DNA of 63,359 nt, filler included, from Octopus bimaculoides (GCF_001194135.2; 5 parts of 4 records of this genome joined end to end with filler, not necessarily neighbours in it); one strand, 5' to 3'; shown: positions 30,964 through 31,159, numbered from the whole stretch's first letter. Translations and numbers: made by a program. The notes: a model not told the origin generated them from the letters alone.

Positions 30964-31159
30964 TTATTCACATCTTTCAATATCAGTTTCCGTCGAGTTC
31001 TTCTCACATGAGCAAAGACCATCAGTTGGTCCGAGACAAACTCTCTCACGACGTCTAATTCCAATTTCGCAGGTCGACCATTCGCTCCATTCCGCCATGC
31101 TTCTACCAAACAGACACAAGTCCACTTCTGGTAAGGAATCGCAACTAACAACTGGATTT
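30964..31159 (-). CDS. Peroxidase terminal exon: end of catalytic domain plus TSP1-like repeat ([64 protein letters not shown])
   Basis: long poly-T tract with actttcag acceptor; N.V.C..LP.VDL peroxidase end motif followed by WSxWSxC..G.R.R.R.C; TAA at 30964-30966. Confidence 0.92.

Follow-up and report, generated by a model that had tools for sequence, protein, structure and literature searches.

The heme peroxidase 2 locus and its last exon

The window, which is the whole analysed stretch of 63,359 nucleotides from Octopus bimaculoides (GCF_001194135.2; five parts of four records, joined with filler), contains on its minus strand the gene for heme peroxidase 2, located at CM046620.1:15505667-15526876 of assembly GCA_001194135.2. 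The segment from 31159 to 30964 (-) is the terminal coding exon of this already catalogued gene. Spliced alignment of the window returned exactly the 648-amino acid RefSeq protein from 12 coding exons with GT-AG boundaries throughout. The RefSeq model covers positions 30964 to 48173 (-), with exons 1 to 4 at 48173-48109, 46768-46563, 44716-44534 and 43724-43697, exons 5 to 8 at 42536-42421, 40734-40633, 37749-37654 and 36293-35822, and exons 9 to 12 at 35136-34924, 33800-33634, 32459-32357 and 31159-30964 (all on the minus strand). The best protein match of an approximate spliced query was A0A0L8HBF3 of O. bimaculoides, followed by proteins of O. sinensis and O. vulgaris; XP_014773805.2, annotated as heme peroxidase 2, falls in the A0A0L8HBF3 cluster. 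In an exact-sequence look-up the RefSeq model was found on the genome assembly only, and the UniProt model (P0001) on no contig.

The terminal exon (30964..31159 (-), 196 nt) starts in phase 2 with the last third of a split Thr codon and ends with the stop codon TAA (30966..30964 (-)). The penultimate coding exon (32357..32459 (-)), which carries Cys565 in the motif ILCDN, ends at 32357 with …AAAGTATCAGAAAC followed by gtaagt, the donor GT being located at 32356..32355. The junction 32357/31159 assumed in an earlier, sequence-only reading of the locus was borne out, with GAAAC|gtaagt as donor and a polypyrimidine tract followed by cag|A as acceptor. The acceptor region extends over 31160..31195 (-) and comprises the AG (31161..31160) and the T-rich tract. 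An AATAAA polyadenylation signal can be read at 30877..30882 (-), about 82 nt past the stop codon, a placement consistent with a terminal exon. The C-terminus encoded by the exon is identical to those of XP_014773805.2 and A0A0L8HBF3 and is the same in all public models.

Three elements are encoded by this single exon, namely the last residues of the peroxidase domain (NPVVSC), a linker of 13 residues and a 44-residue thrombospondin type-1 repeat (TSR), which begins about 13 to 18 residues past the last conserved peroxidase cysteine, that of NPVVSC. Since the repeat and NPVVSC share one uninterrupted exon, a gene-fusion artefact or an exon borrowed from a neighbouring gene was excluded. The reading frame had been described as missing from the ORF track, which is correct for the default cut-off of 60 amino acids; with a threshold of 40 amino acids it is listed as a 53-amino acid ORF (30964..31125). 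The peptide quoted at that time is exact apart from nine skipped residues, CLFGRSMAE, between EVDL and WSEW.

At the 5' end of the gene (47348-48173 (-)) three public models disagree: one starts with MADESDIKL…, one with MEDEIGKSG…, and an older one is fused to the MFS transporter gene upstream. A fusion with an MFS gene is also seen in the O. vulgaris model. The UniProt model of O. bimaculoides uses alternative 5' exons (48010-47929 and 47447-47348 (-)) and comprises 13 exons by spliced alignment. The RefSeq start is without an obvious signal peptide, and secretion of the octopus enzyme is an assumption.

Two retroelement-like ORFs, both interrupted by N runs, are located in the window. The first (29032-29927 (-)) gave a weak match to RVT_1 with a score below the cut-off (18.3 bits), and the second (38606-39388 (+)), an intronic ORF between exons 6 and 7, gave no Pfam match. 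Long tri- and dinucleotide microsatellites are found in introns (32499-32620 and 35170-35420) and appear in the ORF list as poly-Val, poly-Thr, poly-Asn and (IY)n, which is ordinary for the O. bimaculoides genome.

Peroxidase domain and thrombospondin type-1 repeat

Membership of the protein in the animal heme peroxidases is evident from both the HMM match and the catalytic residues. Pfam An_peroxidase (PF03098) matched the approximate spliced protein with an E-value of 1.7e-154 (515.8 bits), and the distal Gln, His and Arg (Gln137, His141 and Arg269), the proximal His (His372) and the calcium-ligand Asp (Asp142) are all kept. The two ester bonds that link the heme to the protein in mammalian peroxidases come from Asp94 and Glu242 in lactoperoxidase numbering (PMC3533774). 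In the octopus protein these residues are replaced by Asn140 (44568-44570 (-)) and Gln272 (36274-36276 (-)), a substitution suggesting that the heme may be bound non-covalently and its chemistry altered. The closest relatives, of which the identifiable ones are all cephalopod, have N/V or N/Q at these two positions, and about 23 other mollusc homologues have S/Q. Fourteen cysteines of the catalytic domain recur in 97 or more of the 113 homologues; the last conserved one, Cys590 of NPVVSC (31141..31143 (-)), is found in 111 of them. An odd cysteine, Cys214 (40691-40693 (-)), is located in the calcium-binding loop TSFIDCS and has no obvious partner. Only the three Octopus orthologues among the 113 homologues have Cys at this position, while 100 have Ala or Gly.

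The C-terminal tail is a real TSR, as had been proposed from the sequence, according to the combined results of Pfam, of profile comparison and alignment to TSRs of known structure, and of AF2 and Foldseek. The Pfam profile TSP_1 (PF00090, cut-off 21.6 bits) matched the isolated tail over profile positions 2 to 42 of 49 with a borderline score of 22.4 to 23.8 bits (E=5e-5 to 1.4e-4). In the approximate whole protein the score was 17.3 bits, below the cut-off. An alignment of 28 tails (A1), that of the octopus protein and those of 27 homologous peroxidases, contains six invariant columns, namely the peroxidase cysteine, one ladder arginine and the cysteines C1, C3, C4 and C5 of the canonical TSR numbering; one tryptophan is almost invariant. 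Eighteen of the 28 tails matched TSP_1 individually. Compared with PDB, the A1 profile matched properdin (2.9e-19), thrombospondin-1 (1.4e-16) and UNC5B (3.8e-12), and further matches were obtained with C7, C8alpha, C8beta, BAI1 and ADAMTS13. A search of 1.84 billion representative sequences with the same profile found 4719 proteins. The top 150 of these all matched in several stretches (5 to 50 matches each), with summed scores that swamp single-repeat peroxidases; the result confirms that A1 is a TSR profile, and it gives no measure of how widely the combination of peroxidase and TSR is spread.

The AF2 prediction made from A1 (mean pLDDT 83.7) contained two regular strands, one at tail residues 34-39/41-43 and one at 55-60, which coincide with the expected strands B and C of the three-stranded, antiparallel and layered TSR fold. 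Thirteen of the 15 top Foldseek matches in PDB were TSR-containing chains (BAI1 TSR3, UNC5D, C8alpha, thrombospondin-1, chains of the membrane attack complex (MAC) and the TSRs of semaphorin-5A), with a best target-normalised TM-score of 0.55. The E-values were weak (best 0.12), which is expected with a domain of 45 residues.

The TSR core extends over residues 604 to 647 (30970..31101 (-)) and ends with DIERC; it is supported by Pfam, the PDB profile, the alignment to C8alpha, AF2 and Foldseek. Of the three Trp positions in strand A, the first is occupied by Met and the others by Trp608 and Trp611, leaving two of the three Trp layers. All three tryptophans are present in the homologue P0004, and TRAP likewise is without the first one (Tan et al. 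2002). Strand B consists of IRRRERV followed by Cys, with alternating arginines, and the Trp-Arg ladder of strands A and B is present with Met in place of the first Trp. Strand C extends to Cys647; it contains an Asn-Ser-Thr sequon (30991..30999 (-)), which by its motif is a putative N-glycosylation site.

A chance resemblance in a tail rich in Cys, Trp and Arg, a decaying relic or an artefact of gene prediction would be compatible with the borderline TSP_1 score and its drop below the cut-off in the whole protein, and also with the precomputed Pfam annotation, which assigns TSP_1 to a single one of the 120 best homologues (from Haliotis rubra) and the peroxidase domain alone to the other 119. 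Such an origin is nevertheless highly improbable and was rejected. The profile of homologous tails matches solved TSRs at 1e-16 to 1e-19, four cysteines and one arginine are invariant across the aligned mollusc and brachiopod tails, with Trp nearly so, and the tail shares an exon with a peroxidase motif. P0004, a cephalopod homologue with 50% identity, is encoded by one uninterrupted ORF of 731 amino acids with a tail of the same kind, found on assembled contigs of 2.6 kb from four separate sequencing runs; their size suggests that these contigs are spliced transcripts. Moreover, the terminal exon diverges by 2.6% from those of O. sinensis and O. vulgaris, compared to 9–11% for the last 81 nt of the intron and 8–10% for the 3' flank in the same species, which makes the coding exon 3 to 4 times less diverged than its flanks. 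Within the codons of the TSR core (codons 21 to 63) two synonymous and no non-synonymous changes were found in this comparison, and the position of the stop codon is identical in all three Octopus species.

Cysteine pattern and disulfide bonds of the repeat

A canonical group-1 TSR contains six cysteines paired C1-C5, C2-C6 and C3-C4, a pattern that the octopus repeat does not have, as C2 and C6 are absent. Cys614 (31069..31071 (-)) is the invariant C1 at the end of strand A, Cys625 (31036..31038 (-)) the invariant C3 of the RxRxC motif at the end of strand B, and Cys647 (30970..30972 (-)) is C5, after which one residue follows before the protein ends. The CSC motif (31006..31014 (-)) combines Cys633, an extra cysteine in the B-C loop, with Cys635, the canonical C4 by alignment, whose column is invariant, with x-Gly after it in most homologues. 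A second extra cysteine, Cys599 of the motif DLC in the linker (31114..31116 (-)), is situated where other homologues have DLxxW. It is found in 12 of 113 homologues, all of them closest relatives and, as far as identifiable, cephalopod, and Cys633 in 40 of 113. Alignment to thrombospondin-1 and C8alpha thus confirmed both the loss of C2 (CSVTCG) and C6 as a matched pair and the presence of the two extra cysteines. Compared to thrombospondin-1, a deletion of four residues falls exactly on the CSVTCG segment bearing C2, and with this segment the POFUT2 consensus for O-fucosylation, C-x-x-S/T-C-x-x-G, is absent. The WxxW and WxxC motifs, in contrast, are present as candidate C-mannosylation sites; they fit the consensus given in PMC8433626.

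The group-1 prototype, TSR2 and TSR3 of thrombospondin-1 (PDB 1LSL, 3R6B, 7YYK), shares with the octopus repeat the WxxW of strand A, the RxRxR of strand B and the cysteines of C1-C5 and C3-C4 in the same columns. Thrombospondin-1 TSRs were the best single-sequence match and a near-best profile match. Thrombospondin-1 differs in its six cysteines, with C2-C6 among them, its three Trp layers and its CSVTCG O-fucosylation site, while the octopus repeat has the four-residue deletion, Met for the first Trp and an end after C5.

The reduced pattern had been regarded as a novel rewiring, a view that does not hold, since loss of the third disulfide has already been described for the C-terminal TSRs of the complement proteins C6, C7, C8alpha, C8beta and C9 (Tan et al. 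2002). Like the octopus repeat, these complement TSRs belong to group 1, are without the CSVTCG-type and C-terminal cysteines and hence the third or "bottom" disulfide, and are located at the extreme C-terminus of the protein; in the alignment of C8alpha residues 511 to 551 (PDB 3OJY) with the octopus repeat, the A-B turn is free of gaps. The differences are that the complement repeats have an apparently unpaired cysteine between the first two tryptophans of strand A, whereas the octopus repeat has the linker and B-C loop cysteines, and that the host protein is a MACPF pore-former in one case and a peroxidase in the other.

Group-2 TSRs (F-spondin type, TRAP) have a cysteine before the Trp motif that fastens the beginning of strand A to the top of the domain (Tan et al. 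2002), and Cys599 and Cys633 might form a tether of this kind. However, in group 2 the top disulfide joins strands A and C, the strand-B cysteine C3 is missing and the bottom disulfide is retained, while in the octopus repeat C3 is present and the bottom disulfide absent. Membership in group 2 was rejected, as Cys625 of RxRxC is present and invariant. The match to F-spondin was weak (E=0.09–0.6).

Among the 28 tails of A1, 20 have a linker cysteine and every one of these 20 also has the extra cysteine in the B-C loop. Of the eight tails without a linker cysteine, six lack the extra loop cysteine and two have it, both together with a C6-like cysteine. The co-occurrence is significant by a one-sided Fisher test (p=7.4e-5, n=28), a statistic that ignores shared ancestry. 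The linker cysteine occupies three different alignment columns in different clades, which argues against a single inherited accident. Because the two cysteines occur together in 20 of 20 tails despite these three columns, the extra pair most likely forms a bond within the module, between linker and B-C loop, rather than with the catalytic domain. The simplest reading of parity, co-variation and homology, the latter to thrombospondin-1 in the case of 614-647, would be a repeat with the disulfides 599-633, 614-647 and 625-635. Through the bond 599-633, the N-terminal extension of strand A would be fastened to the repeat at its top, and the three bonds together would make the module self-contained.

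The sequence-only reading had instead envisaged a new disulfide to the catalytic domain. In a wider form of this proposal, Cys599 would bond with either the catalytic domain or a second subunit, welding the repeat to the enzyme and anchoring the enzyme to glycosaminoglycans (GAGs). The octopus Cys214 could in principle serve as a partner, being odd and otherwise unmatched, TSRs of thrombospondin-1 are known to bind GAGs (Tan et al. 2002), and the tails of Haliotis peroxidases are strongly basic. But the 14 conserved catalytic cysteines make up seven pairs, the tail taken alone has an even number of cysteines (six), and equivalents of Cys599 and Cys633 occur without Cys214 in P0004, P0006 to P0011, P0018 and a peroxidase of Euprymna scolopes. 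The octopus repeat is, moreover, acidic (net charge -3, nine acidic residues). The linker cysteine is, finally, strictly paired with the loop cysteine, and the proposal as a whole is considered quite unlikely.

Distribution, relatives and possible role

Tails of the TSR type are present in about half of the 120 best homologues, and all identifiable carriers are molluscs or brachiopods. The strict pattern WxxWx(1-3)C was found after the peroxidase domain in 42 of the 120, and a looser pattern in 55 distinct proteins, near-identical cluster members being left out of this count. Cephalopod carriers include several Octopus paralogues, Argonauta, Euprymna scolopes and one cluster with an entry from the cuttlefish Acanthosepion. 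Among gastropods, the repeat is found in Haliotis, Lottia and Patella, frequently as two tandem repeats, and among bivalves in unionids, venerids, oyster and mussel. Further carriers are the chiton Liolophura and the brachiopods Novocrania and Lingula. The arthropod, amphioxus and sea-urchin homologues sampled have no such repeat; they end about 40 to 75 residues past the CDN motif or bear extensions of non-TSR type. The distribution suggests that the TSR tail may be an old feature of a mollusc and brachiopod group of peroxidases. The architecture, for which novelty had been considered earlier, is accordingly a common one in the related peroxidases of these phyla, including one of E. scolopes and other Octopus paralogues. 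With TSP_1 assigned to one in 120 of the best homologues, the tail is under-annotated; it is a modest feature, with a reduced cysteine pattern of a known kind.

The gastropod tails vary in several respects. Two tandem compact TSRs are common (P0025, P0030, P0033, P0035, P0036, P0045, P0058 and others), the first tandem repeat of Haliotis is strongly basic with a net charge of up to +13, and cysteine variants exist that combine CxC with a C6-like cysteine in tails without the linker cysteine.

The peroxidase-like protein Q24926 of E. scolopes (P0008; 43% identical overall) and other cephalopod paralogues share both architecture and cysteine pattern with the octopus protein, for example in …NPVVDCSSLPTADQCSLVRTYSAWTAWSDCINNQRVRTRTCLTPATGACSCDGVPAETQIGQC…. 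Q24926 differs in that its N-terminal region is long and rich in Ala and its signal peptide is clear, and, like the other cephalopod relatives, it represents a different paralogue from the octopus gene. No description of a fusion of peroxidase and TSR was found in the literature searched, a body of work outside which the squid and cuttlefish enzyme cloning papers of the 1990s lie.

Some relatives are named peroxidasin-like, although the octopus protein is not a peroxidasin. Peroxidasin has LRR and Ig modules before and a vWC module after its peroxidase domain, with no TSR among its modules (PMC3533774). This identity was rejected for the octopus protein, as Pfam, applied to the approximate spliced protein starting with its mature N-terminal region, found An_peroxidase and TSP_1 as the only domains, with LRR, Ig and vWC all absent. 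Peroxidasin and the ADAMTS proteases are functional analogies only, being secreted enzymes with extracellular-matrix modules beside the catalytic domain. In ADAMTS13 the TSR follows protease and disintegrin domains, and the octopus protein is without a metalloprotease domain. The TSRs of ADAMTS proteases act as targeting modules.

By analogy, the octopus repeat could serve adhesion or targeting, keeping a secreted enzyme that produces oxidants on a matrix, a cell or a microbial surface. Taken as a whole, the explanation that the locus encodes the terminal exon of heme peroxidase 2 with a compact TSR, that the extra disulfide is internal and that the repeat has an adhesive or targeting role is considered probable. 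A heparin- or GAG-binding role is weakened for the octopus protein by its negative net charge and by its having only two Trp layers. The corresponding net charges are -5 to +1 for the closest relatives and +3 to +13 for Haliotis.

The repeat might also be mainly an element for folding, secretion or assembly, either as a C-terminal cap, in which C-mannosylation and disulfides would aid exit from the ER, or by mediating oligomerisation as in properdin. The motifs that fit the C-mannosylation consensus of PMC8433626 would suit such a cap, the repeat adjoins the last conserved peroxidase segment with only the 13-residue linker between them, and a net charge ranging from -5 to +13 across lineages would be unexpected if one shared ligand were recognised. 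On the other hand, the homologues of arthropods, amphioxus and echinoderms fold and function without a TSR tail, and the two tandem copies of several gastropod proteins are more typical of adhesive arrays. The adhesive or targeting module is preferred, and both forms of this explanation are rated as rather unlikely, though still a serious alternative.

A more far-reaching proposal, put forward here only tentatively, is that the mollusc and brachiopod peroxidases constitute a subfamily not yet described, whose defining mark is one compact C-terminal TSR or two. The cephalopod repeat may then be a hybrid with the top bond of group 1, an N-terminal tether like that of group 2 and no bottom bond, and it may direct the enzymes, including paralogues of the light organ and the ink gland, to particular matrices or microbial surfaces. 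Both heme-ester residues are missing from many of these enzymes.

A targeting function of the tail would indicate where mollusc peroxidases act; possible sites are the matrix of shell or byssus, the egg envelope, ink-gland melanosomes and the bacteria of the squid light organ. It would also provide an experimental handle, for example by deletion of the tail or its use as a probe. No new class of system is opened by the octopus peroxidase tail. Standard domain annotation, however, misses the repeat in most of its carriers (one labelled protein in 120 versus about half with a tail), and a clade-specific profile would correct the annotation of the "peroxidase-like" and "peroxidasin-like" proteins that are widely used in studies of shell matrix and immunity.

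Three paralogues of O. bimaculoides (P0012, P0122 and P0147) all have TSR tails. Each is located on a record of 47,890,971 bp, which for P0122 is CM046620.1, suggesting that the three share a chromosome, where they may form a cluster.
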